A stretch of 51,969 nucleotides of DNA from Octopus bimaculoides (taxonomy: Eukaryota), in contig NC_068981.1 of the NCBI RefSeq assembly GCF_001194135.2, forward strand, positions 23,135,116 through 23,187,084, given 5' to 3'. The translations under genes and the position numbers were made by a program. Of this stretch, positions 7,379 through 38,525 are shown piece by piece (the first letter of the stretch is position 1; each line of letters starts with the position of its first letter). Under the pieces are notes generated by a model. That model was not told where the DNA came from, did not search any database, and saw only the letters and a program-made list of their open reading frames with translations.

Positions 7379-7995
7379 TCATCATCATCATCATCATCAT
7401 CATTTGACCTCCGCCTTCCATGCTAGCATGGGTTGGACGATTTGACTGAGGACTGGCAAACCAGAAGGCTATACCAGGCTCCAATCTGATCCGGCAGAGT
7501 TTCTATAGCTGGATACCCTTCCTAATGCCAACCACTCCGAGAGTGTTGTGGGTGCTTTTACATGCCACCAGCACGAGGGCCAGTCAGGCAGTATTGGCAA
7601 TGGCCATGCTCAAAAGGTGTTTGTTATGTACCACCTGCACAGGAGCCAGTCCAGCGGCACTGGCAACCACCTCGCTCGAATGTTTTTTTCACATGCCACC
7701 AGCACAAGAGCCAGTAAGGTGATGCTGGTAACAATCACGCTCAAATGGTGCTATTTACGTGCCACTGGCATGGAAGTCAGACAGCTGCTCTGGCAATGAA
7801 CAGGCTCGGATAGTGCTGCTAGTGCTCTACTGGCGCAGGTGCCAGTCATCGAATTTGGTTCAGTTTCGATTTCACTTGCCCCAACAGGTCTTTGCAAGCC
7901 GAGTTTAGTGTCCAATGAAGGAGAGGTTGGCATGGGTGCCAGTTGTTGAATTTCGATTGATTTCATTTGCCTCAACAGATCTTCGCAAGCAGAGT
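7379..7995 (-). mobile_element. Retroposon family A copy
   Basis: Aligns along its length with the 1552 copy. Confidence 0.85.
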
Positions 7996-9289: not shown

Positions 9290-9875
9290 GACATTTGCAT
9301 AAAATACACCATTCTGAGTGTGGCCATTGCCAGTACCACCTGACTGGCCTTCGTAGGATTTTCGAGCGAGATCGTTGCCAGTGCCTCTGGACTGGCTCTT
9401 GTGCGGGTGGCACATAAAATACACCATTTTGAGTGTGGCCGTTGCCAGTACCGCCTGACTGGCCTTCGTGCCGGTGGCACGTAAAAGCACCCACTACACT
9501 CTCTGAGTGGTTGGCGTTAGGAAGGGCATCCAGCTGTAGAAATTCTGCCAAANNNNNNNNNNGATTTTCGAGCGAGATCGTTGCCAGTGCCTCTGGACTG
9601 GCTCTTGTGCGGGTGGCACATAAAATACACCATTTTGAGTGTGGCCGTTGCCAGTACCGCCTGACTGGCCTTCGTGCCGGTGGCACGTAAAAGCACCCAC
9701 TACACTCTCTGAGTGGTTGGCGTTAGGAAGGGCATCCAGCTGTAGAAATTCTGCCAAATCAGATTGGAGCCTGGTGTTGCCATCCGGTTTCACCAGTCCT
9801 CAGTCAAATCGTCCAACCTATGCTAGCATGGAAAGCGGATGTTAAACAATGATGATGATGATGATGATGACGATA
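9290..9875 (+). mobile_element. Retroposon family A copy, opposite orientation, containing an assembly overlap
   Basis: Reverse complement of the 7379 copy; (GAT)n tail at 9849-9873. Confidence 0.85.
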
Positions 9876-17837: not shown

Positions 17838-18470
17838 ACATCATCATCATCATCATCGTTTAACGTCCGCCTTCCATGCTAGCATGGGTTGGACGATTTG
17901 ACTGAGGACTGGTGAACCAGATGGCTGCACCAGGCTCCAGTCTGATCTGACAGAGTTTCTACAGCTGGATGCCCCTTCCTAAAGCCAACCACACCGAGAG
18001 TGTAGTGGGTGCTTTTACGTGCCACTGGCATGAGGGCCAGTCAGGCGGTACTGGCAACGGCCATGCTCAAATGGTGTTTTTTTACATGCTACCTGCACAG
18101 GAGTCAGTCCAGCGGCACTGGCNNNNNNNNNNCACTGGCACGGAAGCCAGACAGCTGCTCTGGCAATGATCCTGCTCAGATGGTGCTGTTAGTGCTCCAC
18201 TGGCACAGGTGCCAGTCATCGAATTTGGTTCAATTTGGATTTCACTTGCCCCAACAGGTCTTCGCAAGCAGAGTTTAGTGTCCAATGAAGGAAGGTTGGC
18301 ATGGGTGCCAGTCGTCGAATTTGGTTCGATTTCGATTTCACTTGCCTCAACAGGTCTTCGCAATCAGAGTTTAGTGTCCAAAGAAGGAAAGGTACACGTA
18401 AATGGGCTGGCTACACCCCCCGTGAAGGCCACAAGTTATGGTCTCACTTGTCTTGCCGGGTCTTCTCACG
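17838..18470 (-). mobile_element. Retroposon family A copy
   Basis: Aligns with the 1552 and 7379 copies. Other copies at 25843-26108 (-), 23917-24130 (+), 20230-20335 (+) and 26398-26690 (inverted pair). Confidence 0.85.
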
Positions 18471-18900: not shown

Positions 18901-19647
18901 AAAAATCATTATCATCATTCACAAGCAAATCATGACTTTGTATCACGTACCATGCTTTTGCTAATGGTTCCAGGCGCTTATGAGGTCATAGATACCCACT
19001 TAGCCCTTCTATCCTTCATCTAGCAGAATATCCAGGGTGAGAGAAAGAGTGAGATTGAGAGAGAGAGAGAGAGAGGATGTACACATGATGGCAGGTACTC
19101 CTTTCAGCATAGAGAGGAGCAATATAAAATGGAGTATCTTGCTCAAGGATACAACATCCACCACTGTCCAGGAATTGAACCCATGACTTTATGATTCAGG
19201 GTGTAAACACTTTAACCCCTAGGCAACGTGCTTCATTGCAGAATAATTAGTGTTATTACATATCATGAACCCTGTAATGTGATGATAATTGTCCAGGAAT
19301 GGCTTCAAAATGTCAGTATTCTCACTTGAATTGTTAATGTTATATCAAAGGATATTGAATGTTACACTCCCAAATTTCATAAACGTTGATGTATTACGAG
19401 CCAACACATCTACATGGTTGTTATACTTGTTAGAAATAGAAAATAGGTGTCCCTCAAATTGATCCTAGTCTTAAAAAAAGGAAGGATATTTTAGATAATA
19501 TATATATAAAAAAAAACCCAAAATGTTTAGAATAACATAAAAGGAATAATTTCCATTTTCATAAAGGCAATATTATAATTTCAGTAAGGTTTAGACAATC
19601 ATTTCTCAACCATAAGGTTTTGGGTTCAGTCCCACTTTGTGATGGAA

Positions 19648-22861: not shown

Positions 22862-22939
22862 CTAATGATATGGCATCTTCATTAATGGAAAGCTCTTCAT
22901 ATTTATAATTTTCATCACAATCATCACTGAAAGTTTCCG
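22862..22939 (-). CDS. SPAG16: SPAG16 exon 2 (PETFSDDCDENYKYEELSINEDAISL)
   Basis: 78 nt, cttcag acceptor and G|gtaaga donor, phase 1 to 1. The acidic YKYEE segment resembles human DDYEYEE. Confidence 0.85.
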   Translation of the reverse strand, partial: RKLSVMIVMKIINMKSFPLMKMPYH

Positions 22940-23394
22940 CTGAAGTGATTAGTCAAAGAAGCAAAATTGGTATAGTAGTTTAGCCCCAGGGTAACCATGG
23001 TCAAGTAAACCTAAGATTAACTGTTTAGTATTTAGATTACTTTGTGAAATGTAACACCTGTGTAATCATAATGTTTTAAGATTATCCACCATCTTTCTGA
23101 CATCAACCTTGGGCACCTTTTGAATTCCATATGTCTAACATTCGTGGACGTTCGTTTGTTCTTTTATTTGTTTCAGTCATTTGACTGTGGCCATGCTGGA
23201 GCACCACCTTTAGTCAAACAAATCAACCCCAGGACTTATTCTTTGCATGCTTAGTACTTATTCTTATTTCTTTATTGCCCACAAGAAGCTAAACATAAAG
23301 GGGACAAACAAGGACAGACAAAGGGATTAAGTCGATTACATCGACTCCAGTGCATAACTGGTACTTAATTTATCGACCCCGAAAGGATGAAACA

Positions 23395-23460
23395 TATACG
23401 GGCAAGACAAGTGAAAATTACATAAATATTTATGTAATTTTCACTTGTCTTGCCCGTATA
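23395..23460. repeat. Perfect 66-bp palindrome with no spacer
   Basis: TATACGGGCAAGACAAGTGAAAATTACATAAAT followed directly by its exact reverse complement. Confidence 0.95.
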
Positions 23461-23566
23461 CGTTTTGTTGCTTCGCTAAATTTTCTTTGAGAACAATTCA
23501 GTCTTAGTAGACGCATTACATGTGATCTTCTTCTAGCACATTAACAGTTCACCTAGTGGTCTCCTT

Positions 23567-23598
<32 letters not shown>

Positions 23599-23806
23599 TA
23601 CACATACATACATATAAATAATTTGTGAAAACAAGTTTCCAAATCAATCAGGTGTAACCCTACAGTGTTATACGCATCTACATATCGTACTTTGGGGTCT
23701 TATTTATCATATATTTAAATATTTATCTATAAATATACAAAGTATCTGATAAAAGTCAATATTCAATTTTTGGGGATACCGCATATCAATTAATCCCCCA
23801 AAATTG

Positions 23807-23905
<99 letters not shown>

Positions 23906-24041
23906 TATATAAATGGCTTTAGCAAGGGCATCCAGCTGTGGAAACTATGCTAAAGATGATATTGAAGTCTGACACAACCTTGCAGCTTGCTGGCTTCCTA
24001 TCAAACTGTCCAGCCATGCTAACATGAAAAGTGGATGTTAC

Positions 24042-24117
<76 letters not shown>

Positions 24118-24200
24118 CAATGGTGATGATACACACACACACACACACACATATAGATAAATAGATAGATAGATAAATAAATAGATAGTTTGATAGATAA

Positions 24201-24233
<33 letters not shown>

Positions 24234-24951
24234 CAGATAAACAGATAGATAGATACACATACAGGCTAAAAATTTCTAGTGAGAATCACACTTTGAAAAG
24301 CTAAAGAGTGTAAACTGGTCAGTAAAACAGATTTTCTCTCTAGTTTTTTAATAAAATTTATTTAGTGAAAACTTCACTTCAGTAAAATCAGATTTAGTAA
24401 AATATATTCTCATTTTGAACAATATATTTTATAAAAAAAAACCCTCTTCTGTAAAATCAGACTTACATTATAGGTAAAAAGCACTATAATTTTCTCAGTA
24501 AAACTTTTTTTATGTGAAAACAAGCATTGTAAGTTTTACTGCATATATATNNNNNNNNNNNNNNNNNNNNNNNNNNNNNNNNNNNNNNNNNNNNNNNNNN
24601 NNNNNNNNNNNNNNNNNNNNNNNNNNNNNNNNNNNNNNNNNNNNNNNNNNNNNNNNNNNNNNNNNNNTATAAAAAAATTCAAATATATAAAAAAATGCAA
24701 TACATTTTCAACCCTTTTTATCGTTTTCCTATATATATATACATGTGTGCATGTATGCGTGTATACATATATATTTCTATGCATGTATGTATGATGTATG
24801 TATGTATGTATGTGTGTCTGTATGTATGTTTGTATGTGTGTATGTTTGTATGCATGTGTGTATGTGTTAACTTTACACATGGAATTGGAATTAAATTCTC
24901 TTTGCAAAGTTAATCTGTTAGTAAAAAATTTTAGCAAACAAAACATTGTGA

Positions 24952-25011
<60 letters not shown>

Positions 25012-25146
25012 ACATACACACACACATGCACACACACACACACGCACATACGCTCTCTACAAGGCATCTCCTGAAATATATACATACTTTAACAGCTGAC
25101 AATTCAATTTTCATTTTTTTTTTTTAGTTTTAAACTATTGGAAATA

Positions 25147-25630
25147 ATGAATGGAACTAGACCAAACTTTGAACAAAGGAAATTTATCCTAGAGTGCTAC
25201 TGGAAATTTGAAAACACAGTTGAAGTGCAAATAGAGTTTAGGAGAGTTTCAAACAGATTCATCTATGTAACTTGCCGTCTCTCAAATTAGGGAGAAGTTT
25301 GAAGCAGATGGAACTGTTCAAAATGTCTACAAGAAATATTCTGGAAGGCTTCAGATATCATTGAGCCCCTCAGAGCAAGAAAGTGTACTAGAGATGTGTT
25401 GCCCATCTAGAAAACCTGTGTTGCAAGTGAGTTGTGAGATAGGAATTTCAAAGTCAACCATCCATCGAATTTTGATGTGCTACCATTGGATAAGCTACAT
25501 TCCAAGAATAGTGCAATGTCTCAATGAAGAGATATGGACCGAAGAGTTGAGTTCTGTGAGTCATATATGGAAAGATGTGTAGAAGATGCACACTTTCCAA
25601 CAATGACTGTTTGGAGTAATGAGGTTGCAT
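25147..25630 (+). mobile_element. Tc1/mariner transposase 5' fragment (DUF4817-like HTH) within SPAG16 intron 1
   Basis: MNGTRPNFEQRKFILECYWKFENTVEVQ, then frameshift to QIREKFEADGTVQN..SGR, then GISKSTIHRIL, then [14 protein letters not shown] (degenerate WSDE motif). Confidence 0.8.
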
Positions 25631-27249
25631 ACACACACACACAGAGTTGAAATTTATAGAAAAACAAAAGACGAAGACAGGTGTATGAACAACAAGCAGG
25701 TGTATTAGTTTGATGTTCGGGAAAGTGAGAATGTCTTTTATGTTTCAAGCCTACAGTCTTCAAGAGAAAATAAACAGAGTAAGAATATAAAAAAAATTTG
25801 TGGATATAGCGATCAAGCATAGCGACTGGTTTGACAGGATATCATCATCATCATCATCATCATCATCGTTTAACGTCCGCTTTCCATGCTAGCATGGGTT
25901 GGACGATTTGACTGAGGACTGGTGAAACCGGATGGCAACACCAGGCTCCAATCTAAATTTGGCAGAGTTTCTACAGCTGGATGCCCTTCCTAACGCCAAC
26001 CATTCAGAGAGTGTAGTAGGTGCTTTTACTTGTCACCCACACGAAGGCCAGTCAGGCGATACTGGCAACGGCCACGCTCGAAATGGTGTCTTTTATGTGC
26101 CACCCGCANNNNNNNNNNNNNNNNNNNNNNNNNNNNNNNNNNNNNNNNNNNNNNNNNNNNNNNNNNNNNNNNNNNNNNNNNNNNNNNNNNNNNNNNNNNN
26201 NNNNNNNNNNNNNNNNNNNNNNNNNNNNNNNNNNNNNNNNNNNNNNNNNNNNNNNNNNNNNNNNNNNNNNNNNNNNNNNNNNNNNNNNNNNNNNNNNNNN
26301 NNNNNNNNNNNNNNNNNNNNNNNNNNNNNNNNNNNNNNNNNNNNNNNNNNNNNNNNNNNNNNNATATATAGATATATATATATATATTATTATTATAATC
26401 ATCGTTTAACGTCCACCTTCCATGCTGACTTGGGTTGGACGGTTTGATAGGAGCTGGTCAAGCAGAAACCTGCACAATGCTTCTGTGTCTGTCTTGGCAT
26501 GATTTTTTTATGGCTGGATGCCTTTCCTAACACCAACCACAGCCGTAAAAATTCTGCCAAAAACAGAAACAATAACTTAAGGTAGTTTTCTACTTGACTG
26601 GCTCCTGTCAACCATCCTCCTACCCATGCATGCATGGATGACGGATGTTAAACGATGATGATGATGATAATGACGACGACGACGATGATGATGATAAAGC
26701 AAAAAAGGTCAGTGTAAGGTTAGTATATTCCAAAATTCCTTGTGTAGGAAGTTACTAATGTTCAAGAATGTATGCAGCTAGTATAGATGACAAAAGGTGG
26801 ACAATATACTTAGAATAGAATTTATTAATCATCATAAGTAACCCCCCCCCCCACACCAGTGAACATAAGAGTGTAGGCTGTACATAAATAACTTTTTATA
26901 GGAATGGAGTATTGGTGATAACATGATATGAAAGTGCTTATTACAGTACAGTAATGTACATGGAGAGATATTCTCATTATTTATTGCTTAAAGTATGTTC
27001 ATGAGTACGATATTTTACTTATATTTTGTTTCAGAGACAACAACATTCAATGTAAGTAATCTCATAAAAGAGAAGTGGATCTCTGTTTGTTTATCTGTCT
27101 ATCTGTAACAACATCTATTAAAGGGAGGAAAAGAAGGAGAGAAATGAAAATATATGTCATGTCACAATGTATCTTTAGAAGGGAGAAGAAAAAGATTTTT
27201 GAGAGAGAAATAGAGAGAGAGAGAATGAAATAGAGAGAGAGAGAATGAA

Positions 27250-27314
<65 letters not shown>

Positions 27315-28068
27315 GTGTGTAAGAGATAGATAGATAGTCAGACAGACAAATAGTTAGATAGATAGATAGATAGATAGATAGAGAGAGAGAGTGAGTGAGT
27401 GAGTGAGAGGCTGAAGATAGATAGATAGATAGGTAGTGTTGTGACCATAGTAATTAACAATTTTTGATTAAAAACGCGGGTAATTTGAGTACAAGTCTGT
27501 AACAACACAGCTTAAAAAATGATTTTCATTATATAACAATATAGTTATTCTTTTGGTTGTTGCTGTGTGTGTGTCTGTGTATTTCTGTATGTCTTTCAAC
27601 ACAGAGACAATGCAATGCAATGCAACACAGCTTCAAAATAATTTAAAAAATCGTCTTTCACTATATAACAATATAGATAGTTATTTTTTGTTTTTTTTAT
27701 CTCCACGCGCACGCGCGCGCGTTTCTGTACGTCTTTCATCATAAAGACAATGCGACACACGTTAAAAAAAAACGACTTTCACTATATAACAGTGCTATTA
27801 AAAGGTATGTGCATGATTAGCAAATATTTTTACTGGCAGAGTAGTGATAGATAATAACTTACACATAAAAATAAAGTGTTTTATATAAATATACATACAT
27901 ACATATATGCTGAAGAGCGCAGGCTCGAAATGTAAAAGACTTCGTCACTTTCCCGAGCGTCAAACTAATACACCTGATTGTTGCTCATATTCCTGTTTTC
28001 GTCTTTTGTTTTTCTGTAAATTTCAACTACATATATATACACACATATATATATATATATATATATGT

Positions 28069-28446
28069 TCTTTTTATTCTTTAACTTGTTTCAGTCATTT
28101 GACTGCGGCCATGCTGGAGCACCGTCTTTAGTCGTAGAAATCGACCTCAGGACTTACTTTTTGTAAACGTAGTACTTATTCTATCGATCTCTTTTGTCGA
28201 AATGCTAGGTTACGGGTACGAAAATACACCAACAAGCGATAGTGAGGGAACACAGACACACACAAATACGCACACACATATATGACGGGCTTCTTTCAGT
28301 TTCCGTCAACACAAATCCACTCACAAGGCTTTGGTCAGCCCGAGTCTATAGTTAGAAGACTCTCATTCAAGGTGCCACGCAGTGGGACTGAACCCGGAAC
28401 CATGTGGTTGGGAAGCAAGCTTCTTACTACACAACCACACTGCGCC
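28069..28446 (-). mobile_element. SINE family C copy
   Basis: Full head and tail matching the 8479 copy. Confidence 0.85.
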
Positions 28447-28943
28447 TATATCTATGTATATTTATATAAAATGTTTATTTTTATATGTACACTAAGTTAT
28501 TATATATCACTACTCTGCCAGTAAAAATATATGTATGTATACAGAGAGCACAAGAGAGAGAGAGAGAGAGAGGGAAAGAGGGGGAGGGAGAGAGGGGAGA
28601 GGGAGGGACAAATATGTTCATATATAAATAAAGTGGAAGTATACAAAAATAGACCTTATTTCCCATCTTACTGTTAGTTTTGTTTCATTCATTTTGTTTA
28701 TAATTGTTTACATTTCGAATTATATATGGAGGCACCAAAATCTTTTGAGTGCTTAGGCCCTCTATGGGTCTTAATCCGGCCCTGCCAAAATTCCATCTTT
28801 CAACGATAACAGGGGTTCTCAACGTAGGCGGTACTGTTCCCCAAGAGGGCGCTGGACATATCGAAGGAGGTTCAGGTTTTAGGGGGTCGTTGAGGTTACG
28901 TAATCAGCATGCTACCTTTTACTTATAGTAGTAATTATATTAT

Positions 28944-29296
28944 GTGGTTAGGGCAGCGGCCTCGCAGTCGTAGGATCGCGGTTTCGATTTCCAGACTGGG
29001 CGTTGTGAGTGTTTATTGAGCGAAAACACAAAAAGCTTCACGAGACTCCGGCAGGGAGTCGTGGCAAACCCTGCTGTATTCTTTCTCTCACTCTTTCTTC
29101 CTGTTTCTGTTGTACCTGTATTTCAAAGGGCCAGCCTTGTCACACTCTGTGTCACACTGAATCTCCCTGAGAACTACATTAAGGGTACATATATCTGTGG
29201 AGTGCTCAGCCACTTGTTCATTAATTTCACGAGCAGGCTGTTTCGATGATCGGATCAACTGGAACTCTCGTCGTCGCAACCGACGGAGTGCCACCA
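28944..29296 (+). mobile_element. tRNA-derived SINE (head 1 / tail 1), slightly 5'-truncated
   Basis: Same family as the 31580 copy, more diverged. Confidence 0.85.
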
Positions 29297-29911
29297 ACTA
29301 TATTATACATGATAAAACTAGTAACGATTATTAAAATAAAATGAGCGATAAGTAATGTGCTGCTATTTCTAGCAGGTCGAGCAATAGTGTAGGTTCTATA
29401 CAATTGTTCGTCCTGATATAGAAAATTTAGCTAGATCTCATCAGGTACAGGAAAGTCATTAACTTGCAATGTATGAAGTAAATTCACATTTGTTTTCATT
29501 TAATTTTTTTATGATGTCACTGTTAAAAGCTTATACAATCTATTTTTCGAGTAAGAACCACTGAATCACGCCCATCTGAAGAGTGCTATAGACTACTAAT
29601 GTTTTAGTAAAAAAAAAAAAATCAAAAATAAAAATTAGCTGACGACAACAATGAACCAAAATATATTGCTTTGTGCTTTAGTCAAAAGAAAGCAACAAAA
29701 ATACCAACATTAACTAAAATATTAATAATGTTAGTGTGTTTGTATTATAAATACAAGACCTGTCTTAAAATTGAACGAGCTAGAGTACGTAAATTTCACC
29801 GCAAGTACCAAAGTACACATACACATGAAAAAAAAAATATCTACCTACATTATCTTTACGTAGATTTCACTTGAACCTAATTTATTTTATAGTTTTCGCA
29901 ATAAAGGATAC

Positions 29912-29954
29912 GTTCTAAATAATATTTCTCTTCGTTTGGGTCAATCTCTGCCAT
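29912..29954 (-). CDS. SPAG16: SPAG16/PF20 orthologue, coding exon 1 (MAEIDPNEEKYYLE + C)
   Basis: ATG at 29954-29952. The YYLE motif matches the SPAG16 N-terminus as I recall it (human AYYLEQ). The exon ends in phase 1 at donor GTATCCTTT and joins exon 2 in frame. Confidence 0.85.
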
Positions 29955-29966
29955 AGCTGTTCTGCC

Positions 29967-29980
29967 GTTACTATAGTAAC
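29967..29980. promoter_or_regulatory. RFX X-box (GTTACTATAGTAAC)
   Basis: Perfect 14-bp palindrome fitting the GTNNYY-AT-RRNAAC X-box pattern, 12 nt upstream of the SPAG16 ATG. Ciliary genes are classic RFX targets. Confidence 0.7.
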
Positions 29981-32018: not shown

Positions 32019-34721
32019 CAGGGTTGCCACTCATCAAATAATAAAACACCCAGATTATTTGCTGCAAAAAACCCAGATCCTATTTTATAAACCCAGATGT
32101 TAGAAAATAGGTATATAATTGGTAATTTAAAGATAAAATATGTTATATGACAAAATGAATACAGAATTTAATACGTTATATCATATGGCAGTTAATTGTC
32201 AATTTCGTACATATCCACATCGTCTTCATTCACTCCTCCCTTTTTGAAGTGCAATCTACTCATATATCTACGGTGACAAGACCCATCCACTACATTTTTA
32301 ATAAGTTTAGCGTTCGGCTCCCAAGAAATGCATATCGCTCCCTTTCTTGTAATTGCTTGTTTAGCGAGAAGACGATCGGTGATCGTTTCGGTTTTCAACC
32401 TATTAGTGAACTTGGTCTTTGTGCAATTTACTTGGGAAAATATGCGCTCCACGCACTCTGATGAATAAGGTAACACCGTCACATTAGTCATGAATTGTGA
32501 CAGCCTCTCAAATTTAGAGTGGTCAAGCCCGTCTTTAAGATTGTGCATGGAATACCAGAATTCAGGGATGCTTTTTGAGGAAACAGGAATATCTTTATAT
32601 TGCCGAAATAATTTCCATTCATCGTCTATTTTATCAAGTGTGTTTTCTGGTGCAATTGCTGGAAAGTTTGTTGCCAAGGGAATTATTGACTAAGGAGATC
32701 GCGCGCTACTTTTGGATCAAGTATTTCTAAGAGGGCAAACACTCCAGCATCATCGAGAGAAAAGCGCGTTTGTATTTGAGAGCATAATTCTATTAAAAAT
32801 TTTTGCAATCAGTTTTGAATGTTGCTGAGTCACCAACGATGGAATTTTGTTCTAGATATCTCATTGCGTGTCCACCGAGGTAAATATCACTCATATCTTT
32901 GTGATTTGTTGTGTTATTAAGACCAATATCTGTCTGATAATGTAGATACAGCTAAAACATTCTCTTTTATAAAGCAACTAAGGATATTTTTATATTCACT
33001 GGATACAAGTATATGCAACACATGCATTCAAAAGTGTTCCGATTGAAACTCGACATTAAGAGTCTTTACTTTCTTTAATATATAATGTAAGAAGAGCAGT
33101 ATGTGCTTCGTCCCTTTGTTAATCATTGTTTCATAGATTCTTTTTTGCTCCGTTCACTTTTCTACGTTAGCCTCAAACTGAAAATAAAGTACAAGGGCAT
33201 CCCGCTGTTCTATTATAACGTTAATTACATTTTCACGTGACAACCATCTAGTTTGTGAAAGCTTTGAAATCTTGTTTTCTTTTGTGCCAACAGCACTTTG
33301 TATCATACTGAAGTCATTTTGAGGTTTGCCACTTTGAGAAAAGTAAGAAGTTAAGTCCTTTAAAAGGACTCGAGATACGAAGGTAACACCTTCACTGCAT
33401 GATTTGAACAAGGTGCAAACGAATGGCAAACACAGCCTATTGTAAATACAGTCGGAATATCGTTTCTCAATAACTTTTGAAACACGCTCTCGTTACCCAT
33501 CAATGTTGAGTAATTATCGCTGGCAAATCCAAGTATGTTGCTCATAGATACATCTTCTTTTGTAAGCGTAGACTTGACAGCATCGTACAAACCACGAGAT
33601 GAACCATTTTCTCCTACAAAGAATATCCTTGACATTAAGCGGTTGTTCATCAAAAAAAGCGAACAGCTATTGCTAAGATTTGTGTCACTGAGATGTCCCT
33701 ACTCTCATCTATCAATACTGAAAACTTTTGTTTCTTGAGAATTTCCAAGATTTCATTTCGATCATAATGTGCAATTTCGTCTAGCATAATGTGAGTTAAG
33801 TTTTTTTTTTTTTTTCATTTGTAGATTTTTAGCTATTTCACTATCGGGAAAGGCCTTTTTACAAATTTCAGCTAAGTGATTTATATGAATGAAAGATAAG
33901 TGGTGTTTAGCAACATAACCTGTCAGTTGCTACATTTTCATTTAATGTATCATCTGTTTTTTTTAACAATAAATGAATCTAATTTAATTGCAGATTTCGC
34001 ACAATCAAAAACTTTCTTGTGTTTGGCAGTGTTTTTATGAGCTAATAGCTTTGATTTGATTTGCTAGCATTTTTCAACACAACGTTGCAACAAACGCAGT
34101 AGCAGGTGTCAGGATTTTTATCATCTTGCCGTAAGCAATCTTTAAGCTCAGCATCTTCCAACCACGACTTCTTGGAATTTTGGGTTTACCACTTCTCCTT
34201 TTTGGACACACTATTGTCTGCCATTACTTCGCAAAGGGTTACAAAACAAAAACACTCATTCAAAATGTTAAACAGATTTTAAATCGCGAGTAACAATCGG
34301 AGCGTACACCATCAACACAGTGAAGCTGTCAACTGGCAGTGTCAGAGTTTCAGACAAGTGTACAAGCGGCCACTAACGCGTTGTAACTTGTAGTTGCACG
34401 ATATGATACAAGTATAAACAAATATTGAACGCACACAATCGGTAATTATGTCACATACAATATTTCTATAGATAAGTTCATTACGTGAGATGATTATGGA
34501 TAATATATAGAAAGTTTACCAAATATTAGAAGAGGTGCCATCTTGGTACATATTGAATACAAAGAGTATGACGTCAAATTCTTTTTAAAAGATAAGTTTG
34601 CAGCCAAAGCTAACTTAAAAACCCAGATTTTATGTAAATTTGGAAATTAAAATCCATAAACCCATCATTGCTCCAAAAAACCCCCAGATCTGGGCGGAAA
34701 AAGCCATCAGTAGCATCCCTG
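32019..34721 (-). mobile_element. Full-length degenerate hAT DNA transposon (about 2.7 kb)
   Basis: TIRs CAGGGTTGCCAC (32019) and CAGGGATGCTAC (reverse complement, ending 34721). 8-bp TSD CTGAGAAG / CAGAGAAG (7 of 8 match). Subterminal AAACCCAGAT repeats at both ends. Internal transposase remnant. Confidence 0.9.
32192..34224 (-). pseudogene. hAT transposase pseudogene (N-terminal Zn finger, catalytic core, C-terminal dimerisation domain)
   Basis: Fragments CYCVCC..HKNTAKH, GFASDNYSTLMG, CVCHS, LSQTRWLS and IPEFW..LPYSSECVERIFSQVN lie in different frames with stops and frameshifts (first stop at codon 13). Confidence 0.9.
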
Positions 34722-37493: not shown

Positions 37494-38345
37494 TTATAAT
37501 GTGAATAACTGATATTCAGTAGACAAGCTCTTTGCATTTTTCAGTGAAAGGACCCTATTAGGCATGTTACTGATCAGATGACGAATTTTCTCTTGCGGAA
37601 ATTTTTGCCAAGTTTCATGCCGTAAACTCAAGAGATCTGGCTTTGAAGATGCTTCCTTGTTCTTTTTAGGAAGTGTCTTGTCCATTATGTCCTATTATGG
37701 TGACTGACTTTTTAATGCCATTCTCATCTAACAAATCTTGGGTCATGTTAGCCGTGTGATAAAGAGCCCCATCTTCCATAAATAGTCTTCTTTAATAATT
37801 TTACCACTGGAGAAGATTGGAAGGAGTTCTTTCTGCAATATGGACATATATTTATCTGAATTTGCTTCCCTCATACTCCACCAGCTCTGATCAACCATTG
37901 CTCCAAATTTCTCCCCAGATCATCACAGAATAGTTGTGTGTTTCATTGTTAGTTGCAATCTTTTCACATCAAATTCTTGATTACAGAGTCTTCAGACCCA
38001 CACTCGATCACTGTTAGAAAATACAGCAAATCTGGACTCATCAGAGAATACGACAGTGTCCCAAAATGCTAATGACCTCTCCACCATCTCACTGGCCCAA
38101 TCTTTTCTCCGCTTGATGTTGGCTGGTCGAAAAAGTGGCTTACTTTTTGCTGCTCTGCTATTGTAACCAAGTTTATGGAGATACCTGACAGCTGTTCTGG
38201 AACTGATATCAATTTGTTCTGCTATGTTAGAGACCTTGCAACGAGGATTATCCTCCACACTTCTTTTAACAAAGAGAAAGGTCCTGTCAGAGGGCTTTGA
38301 TTGATCTGGGCGAGGTGATGTAGACTCCTTCTTCTCTCCAGCGAA
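37494..38345 (-). mobile_element. Tc1-family transposase remnant
   Basis: HTH region (VEDNPRCKVSNIAEQIDISSRTAVRYLHKLGY), first catalytic D in VVFSDESRF, second in FMEDGALYHTA, and a C-terminus LISNMPNRVLSLKNAKSLSTEY. Frameshifted, with an internal deletion. Confidence 0.88.
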
Positions 38346-38359
38346 TCGCACACTTACTC

Positions 38360-38525
38360 TCTTAACCGGATTGATCCCAAAATCTAATCAGTTAATGCCA
38401 GTTACGAGACCAAACACCTCTGAAAGTTTCAACCAAATCCATCCAGCGGTTCTTTAGATATCTTGTCCACGGACAAACAAACACAACTGAAAACAATACC
38501 TCGGCTTTTGCTAAGGCGGATGTAA
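38360..38525 (+). mobile_element. Possible non-autonomous Helentron (HINE/DINE-like) fragment
   Basis: AAAGTTTCAACCAAATCCATCCAGCGGTTCTTTAGATATC..ACAAACAAAC..GAAAACAATACCTCGGC..GGCGGATGTAA with a 3' hairpin-like end. It abuts the truncated Tc1 5' end. Family assignment from memory. Confidence 0.35.

Follow-up and report, generated by a model that had tools for sequence, protein, structure and literature searches.

SPAG16 is a protein of the sperm tail and of motile cilia. Its gene is already catalogued as a minor-intron gene: one minor intron per species has been listed for SPAG16 in human (chr2:213284620-213296063, 11,444 nucleotides (nt), donor AAC|GTATCCTTC, branch site TAAAACTTGACA) and in mouse (chr1:69827122-69842968, 15,847 nt, donor AGC|GTATCCTTC, branch site TTAAACTTGACA) (Olthof et al. 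2019, PMC6717393). It has also been described that the human gene contains a 'twintron' of which the U12 intron is the ancestral member, with a U12 variant of 631 amino acids (aa) and a U2 variant of 577 aa, this U12 intron having been traced from human to sloth only (Janice, Jakalski & Makalowski 2013, PMC3564746). With regard to molluscs, minor-intron conservation is the published norm, as most orthologues of human minor introns are also minor in these animals (Olthof et al. 2024), which are relatively rich in minor introns in a comparison that included Octopus sinensis (Larue & Roy 2023). The present analysis concerns a 51,969-nt stretch of Octopus bimaculoides DNA (contig NC_068981.1), hereafter the window, which carries the N-terminal part of SPAG16 on its minus strand. 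The first intron of this gene very probably represents a genuine U12-type intron, an expected orthologue of the known human and mouse minor intron, and genome-wide catalogues (for instance MIDB, or the data of Larue & Roy) probably include it already.

All coordinates are window positions, and intron 1 is read on the minus strand like its gene. It starts at 29911 with GTATCCTTTATT and ends as ...TTTTGC TTCTTTGAC TAATCACTT CAG, its last base being 22940 and the stretch that precedes this end reading CCAATTTTGC, so that its termini, GT...AG, are one of the two pairs (GT-AG or AT-AC) by which U12-type introns are recognised. The branch A is at 22953, and 13 nt separate it from the final base of the intron. 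Exon 2 begins at 22939 with CGGAAACTTTC, reading CG GAA ACT TTC AGT GAT GAT, and its phase-1 junction with exon 1 is in frame, giving ...K Y Y L E P E T F S D D..., where C|CG (Pro) is the junction codon; use of the next CAG, 13 nt 3' of the acceptor, would shift the frame into a stop, as judged by inspection. Exon 1, in its coding part of 43 nt, is without any GT dinucleotide, and read-through into intron 1 meets a stop after 12 codons. Because this coding part has no other GT and read-through ends so early, a full-length protein from this ATG needs the minor-type donor, from which we infer that full-length SPAG16 initiated at this ATG would depend on the minor spliceosome.

Assignment of the intron to the U12 class was based on position matrices derived from 77 human minor introns (Olthof et al. 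2019, Table S2), for 5' splice sites as well as for branch sites, the scores being taken relative to the base composition of the window. The donor AACGTATCCTTT reaches 13.9 bits, which corresponds to the 23rd percentile among 44 human GT-type donors and is equalled at just 2 of 103,916 window positions, and it agrees with the (A/G)TATCCTT, counted from +1, of U12-type introns. The branch site GCTTCTTTGACT scores 9.7 bits (29th percentile among the 77 human minor branch sites), a value equalled at 13 of the 103,916 positions and at none of the 6,852 windows of 40 nt in the interior of intron 1, and it has the TCCTTRAC-like form, its A, at 13 nt, being within the approximately 10-15 nt expected of U12-type introns. 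The octamer GTATCCTT occurs twice in the window, about two occurrences being expected from base composition, and the motif alone is thus not beyond chance; the weight of the predicted U12 assignment is in placement and conservation, not in the bare motif. What lifts it above chance is that the donor exactly ends a homologous coding exon, that a 9.7-bit branch site follows at the proper spacing, and that the same layout recurs in other species. The six remaining SPAG16 introns, with donors GTAAGA, GTAATC, GTAAGA, GTAAGT, GTAAAT and GTAAGT and pyrimidine-rich acceptors, plainly have the predicted signals of ordinary U2-type introns.

It could be argued that the major (U2-type) spliceosome excises intron 1 as well, or that other splice sites are used, the U12-like motifs being coincidental or relics. 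The chance-level frequency of the octamer is in line with this explanation, and GT-AG termini formally fit either spliceosome. On the other hand, the donor AAC|GTATCC agrees with the U1 consensus CAG|GTAAGT at just 4 of 9 positions, and the coding part of exon 1 offers no GT that could serve in its place.

A further string that resembles a U12 donor was observed in intron 4, at approximately 19144-19155 on the minus strand (GTT|GTATCCTTG, 15.5 bits), without an exon or a branch-site partner. Considered as an additional U12 donor, GTATCCTTG near 19155 was rejected because it lies within a copy of a short interspersed element (SINE)-like repeat that has no exon, and because its occurrence is at chance level.

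The gene model was derived from stop-to-stop open reading frames (ORFs) on the minus strand together with splice-site inspection, and its seven exons give an open frame of 255 aa. Exon 3, which was absent from an earlier note on this DNA made from the sequence alone, is situated between exon 2 and the DDFICNFL exon (exon 4); it was recognised by its likeness to the 'EDLxxALxxIQE' exon of metagenome loci and of tuatara SPAG16, and was included because the frame between exons 2 and 4 is broken without it. Direct joining of exon 2 to the DDFICNFL exon via an internal acceptor, GAAG|TA, was dropped once exon 3 had been found. The predicted protein matches mouse SPAG16 (PDB 9ijj, E=4e-41), Chlamydomonas PF20 (7n61/7som, E=2e-38) and tuatara SPAG16 (48% identity over 198 aa, E=1e-62), and the two relatives recovered in a homologue search with the N-terminal 227 aa are a protist ORF and, again, tuatara SPAG16. 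Characteristic elements of the SPAG16/PF20 N-terminal region are present, namely DDF(I/L)CNFL, QKxRDFHRMxHxRxxQE and LKxHYxxxEP. Of particular relevance to the first two exons, the N-terminal 40 residues align without insertion or deletion with mouse SPAG16 residues 31-64, TSEGAYYLEQVTITETSEDECEYEEIP, where the score of the N-terminal domain is weak when taken alone and colinear with the strong SPAG16 match. Within this alignment, YYLE of exon 1 falls on mouse residues 36-39 (mouse reads ...AYYLEQ...), the acidic KYEE motif of exon 2 falls on its counterparts in mouse SPAG16 and Chlamydomonas PF20, and the YYLE-to-YEE spacing amounts to 13 residues in both the window protein and mouse SPAG16. 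WD40 exons taken from a PF20 homologue had no counterpart in the window by tblastn; as the gene leaves the window at its low-coordinate end after exon 7, the WD40 propeller is expected outside it. The earlier note had placed a U12 intron with both signals at the right spacing at 22940-29911 and at the start of SPAG16, joining exons 1 and 2 as YYLE-P-ETF in phase 1. Its coordinates and motifs prove correct when read on the minus strand, the junction reads as it had been given, the protein matches bear out the gene identity, and the scoring with U12 matrices that it had suggested puts donor and branch site within the range of the 77 human minor introns.

Conservation of this arrangement was explored in metagenome contigs, which were scanned for TAYTAYYTNGARNGTATCCTT (YY(L/F)E, a single further base and then a U12 donor), giving at least 120 matches; the donor is therefore selected by the scan pattern, and the branch site and its spacing lie outside that pattern. 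At least 10 contigs carry SPAG16 exons behind M..YY(L/F)E+C|GTATCCTT, in two divergent sequence groups, and at least 9 of these loci extend to exon 2, with introns of 313-1,090 nt that are all in phase 1. The branch-site matches in at least 9 loci score 7.7-15.5 bits, and the 3' splice site follows them at a distance of 10-14 nt; among the matches listed, the branch site is unmatched in the interior of its own intron in 8 of 9 loci, as it is in the window. Group A, among the matches listed, is formed by L025, L036, L060, L038, L094 and L109, together with L101, which stops before exon 2; its exon 1 end and donor read MAVEVDTDKYYFE C|GTATCCTTA, the intron measures 397-1,090 nt, the branch site is CCCTTAAC, TCTTTAAC, TGCTTAAC or TCCTTAAC with the branch A 10 nt from the intron end, and exon 2 encodes (R)HQLLDDSDSEFKYEQ. 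Group B (L068, L029 and L030, among the matches listed) has MADEDGAYYLE C|GTATCCTTT as exon 1 end and donor, an intron of 313-520 nt, the branch site TTCTTTAAC with its A 14 nt from the intron end, and an exon 2 encoding (Q)VTVAEDSDDEFAYEE.

In mammals, the exonic AAC and AGC that precede the listed donors correspond to GA(A/G)+C, that is, Glu and the first base of Gln in YYLEQ, and therefore place the intron in phase 1 after YYLE, as does GAA C| in the window. By virtue of this same site, phase 1 and subtype, intron 1 is the predicted orthologue of the human and mouse SPAG16 minor intron, and the sharing of these three features with both mammals implies an intron that would predate the split between this lineage and the vertebrates. 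By their JGI sample prefixes, group A may come from gutless annelids and group B from corals, a tentative lead; if the group B contigs are indeed coral, the intron would presumably have been of the minor type since before the cnidarian-bilaterian split. The donor and the spaced branch site have thus been kept in human, mouse, the window and two further lineages, in introns of 313 nt to 16 kilobases (kb) whose interiors are unrelated, and the retention of the U12 signals while the interior changes freely points to selection on those signals. This argues further against removal of the intron by the major spliceosome, an explanation that we regard as very unlikely.

The bases immediately 3' of the donor were also found to be similar in unrelated lineages (GTATCCTTTATTGCG at 29897-29903 in the window, GTATCCTTATTGCG in L036 and GTATCCTTTTTGCG in L030), and most of the loci compared (L036, L060, L030, L038, L094 and L025, among the matches listed) have a CG at approximately 12-15 nt inside the intron. 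This likeness may be due to chance or to a promoter-proximal element.

The window contains 11 runs of N, two of which fall within intron 1 (Table 1); both are purely intronic and touch no codon, and the reading frame is therefore not at issue. These gaps of estimated size would nevertheless allow the exon 1-exon 2 layout to be an assembly artefact in which a misjoin or a further coding exon is hidden. Such an artefact is opposed by the colinearity of exons 1-7, which follow the order of the orthologous protein on one strand, by the abutment of exons 1 and 2 with no residue missing relative to mouse SPAG16, and by the recurrence of the same exon 1-U12 intron-exon 2 layout in at least 9 gap-free contigs from other species. 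In addition, both gaps are located in microsatellite or dispersed repeats, and repeats unresolved by short reads are the usual cause of such gaps. Taken together, an artefactual layout appears even less probable than removal of the intron by the major spliceosome. Copies of one dispersed family repeatedly end at assembly gaps (9553, 18123 and 26109), which suggests that this family has an internal tandem part that short reads would not cross.

Dispersed SINE-like repeats and microsatellites account for the 38% of intron 1 that recurs elsewhere in the window. Two ORFs in the intron show weak matches to helix-turn-helix (HTH) domains typical of Tc1/mariner-type transposases, and a tblastn search of intron 1 with the window's Tc1-type transposase gave no match. 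The earlier note had described an intron that absorbed several SINEs and a mariner fragment and kept its signals: the SINEs are upheld in substance by the recurrent fraction, the mariner fragment is weakly supported by the sub-threshold HTH matches, and the signals have indeed been kept, with donor and branch site within the human range in this repeat-rich sequence. Its statement that human SPAG16 has a minor intron in phase 1 after YYLE fits the donors of Olthof et al. (2019) and the mouse ...AYYLEQ..., and the cross-species comparison that it had advised is addressed by the minor-intron listing of human and mouse and by at least 9 further loci, from two lineages, that carry U12 signals in the same phase at this site.

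Several observations weigh against the assignment as a U12-type intron orthologous to that of mammals, or against its details. A single C-to-T change sets the branch site apart from TCCTTRAC, and this change would still be expected to pair with U12 as a G.U wobble. A search of the whole 52-kb window, and of this window only, with Rfam returned no matches of any kind, a result that has no bearing on minor small nuclear RNA genes elsewhere in the genome. The identification of the human and mouse minor intron as intron 1 is presumed from its coordinates relative to the gene starts. The metagenome loci were chosen by their donor and are accordingly uninformative on lineages that lost or converted the intron. 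Moreover, L001, a PF20 homologue in GC-rich (63.5%) protist or algal DNA, is without an intron at this site: the one protist locus examined differs from the window in that MAEPGVLGHEDDDDFQYEEVEIIE (positions 7400-7900 of L001) falls within a single first exon that holds the whole N-terminus, neither a YYLE motif nor, within 3 kb, a U12-like donor being present, and as a guide to the ancestral state L001 was set aside as uninformative. Finally, the length of intron 1 and, strictly, the linkage between exons 1 and 2 rest on a scaffold that spans two gaps.

Table 1. SPAG16 features, repeats and assembly gaps in the window.
Feature	Position	Strand	Description
SPAG16 exon 1, coding part	29954..29912	-	43 nt, ATGGCAGAGATTGACCCAAACGAAGAGAAATATTATTTAGAAC; encodes MAEIDPNEEKYYLE + 1 nt
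Intron 1	22940..29911	-	6,972 nt as assembled (372 N, 6,600 read), GT-AG, phase 1, predicted U12-type
U12-type 5' splice site GTATCCTTT (predicted)	29903..29911	-	13.9 bits, human GT-type minor-donor matrix
U12-type branch-point sequence TTCTTTGAC (predicted)	22952..22960	-	branch A at 22953; 9.7 bits
3' splice site AG	22940..22941	-	first AG 3' of branch site
SPAG16 exon 2, (P)ETFSDDCDENYKYEELSINEDAISL	22939-22862	-	U2-type donor GTAAGA; splice-site inspection
SPAG16 exon 3, GSEDFNTLLKCLKVEEKEKISSASS	21493-21420	-	74 nt; similarity to metagenome loci and tuatara SPAG16
SPAG16 exon 4, ...IPETVDDFICNFLAQMKMKKTLNAFQAEW	20642-20503	-	ORFs and splice sites
SPAG16 exon 5	17587-17450	-	ORFs and splice sites
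SPAG16 exon 6, ...QKQRDFHRMNHHRIVQERNNLMNDIKR	14892-14785	-	ORFs and splice sites
SPAG16 exon 7	11316-11132	-	ORFs and splice sites
X-box-like palindrome GTTACTATAGTAAC, putative RFX site	29967..29980	-	13-26 nt 5' of ATG; read from sequence
Assembly gap	24551-24667	.	117 N; 1,611 nt from acceptor; flanked by (TA)n
Assembly gap	26109-26363	.	255 N; 3,548 nt from donor; within dispersed-repeat cluster
Dispersed family copies	1552-1818, 7379-7639, 9608-9875, 17839-18097, 25840-26108, 26386-26541
Decayed transposase N-terminal (HTH) ORFs	25093..25579	+	DUF4817 E=1e-3, HTH_32 E=1e-4; neither reaches its Pfam gathering score
Decayed transposase remnants (Tc1-type, hAT)	37995-38387 and 32195-32689	-	domain matches

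An X-box-like palindrome precedes the start codon of the window gene (Table 1), and comparable motifs are found in both metagenome groups among the matches listed: GTTG(T/C)CAT(G/A)G(C/A)(T/C)AC approximately 35 nt 5' of the ATG in group A, and GTCGTCC(A/C)TAGCAAC approximately 30 nt 5' of the ATG in group B (L029/L030). A loose X-box regular expression has 22 matches in 104 kb of the window. This putative X-box would fit RFX-type control of a motile-cilia gene, with transcription starting near the U12 intron. In every lineage examined the U12 intron is positioned 34-43 coding bases after the start codon and just 3' of the X-box-like motif.

According to the established model of minor splicing, both ends of intron 1 would be recognised together by the U11/U12 di-small nuclear ribonucleoprotein, with U11 pairing with the 5' splice site GUAUCCUUU and U12 pairing with the branch site UUCUUUGAC so that the A 13 nt from CAG bulges, and U4atac/U6atac.U5 would then catalyse the joining of GAA C|CG GAA. 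Repeat insertions would have enlarged the intron to approximately 7 kb, compared with 0.3-1.1 kb in the metagenome loci and 11-16 kb in mammals. It has been shown that Spag16 is among the few named differentially expressed genes in U11-ablated mouse testis (PMC12956336), an observation which, along with the need for this donor in making full-length protein from this ATG, the promoter-proximal position of the intron and the retention of its minor type across distant lineages, would be compatible with intron 1 acting as a putative rate-limiting gate, or 'throttle', that links SPAG16 output to minor-spliceosome activity. The mouse effect may, however, reflect altered cell composition, which was examined by the authors (PMC12956336), and it has been argued that much of the evolution of minor introns may be due to neutral processes (Larue & Roy 2023); a throttling role is thus a tentative suggestion that we consider rather unlikely. 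The broader proposal that the promoter-proximal minor intron represents a conserved regulatory gate, by which minor-spliceosome activity would be coupled to the building of the central apparatus in motile cilia and sperm flagella, is more doubtful again and would have only a small chance of being correct, the alternative being that the intron is a passively inherited relic.

Two decayed transposase remnants were also observed 5' of SPAG16. One is of the Tc1 type (HTH_Tnp_Tc3_2, E=2e-9, above the Pfam cut-off), and the other corresponds to a hAT dimerisation domain (E=5e-4, just below the cut-off).

The window and the metagenome loci together take the documented SPAG16 U12 intron far deeper than the human-sloth comparison, and provide a clean and well-supported case of a minor intron whose site, phase and subtype would have stayed constant among very distant animals, through a fifty-fold change in length and the overwriting of the interior by repeats. 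Compact orthologues such as these, whose introns measure 313-1,090 nt, would suit work with minigenes on the minor splicing of a cilia gene. At the protein level, Chlamydomonas PF20 and the protist homologues belong to the same family as the window protein and share with it the acidic (K/E)YEE motif that exon 2 encodes. The intron of the window and the human and mouse SPAG16 minor intron have in common the host gene, the site after YYLE, phase 1 and the GT-AG subtype, and their donors are near-identical (AAC|GTATCCTTT in the window, AAC|GTATCCTTC in human and AGC|GTATCCTTC in mouse). They differ in length (window 6,972 nt, human 11,444 nt, mouse 15,847 nt) and in the branch site, since GCTTCTTTGACT of the window, at 9.7 bits, is far nearer to consensus than human TAAAACTTGACA or mouse TTAAACTTGACA, at approximately 0 to 0.8 bits, and their interiors share nothing except that each holds the repeats of its own genome. 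Whereas the human 'twintron' has an alternative U2-type intron, the coding part of exon 1 in the window contains no GT for an external U2 donor. In conclusion, intron 1 is like GT-AG U12-type introns in general in its RTATCCTT donor, its TCCTTRAC-like branch site 10-15 nt from the acceptor, its non-zero phase and its otherwise U2-type host gene, from which it shows no essential difference beyond one wobble-compatible branch-site change and a large size brought about by repeat insertions.

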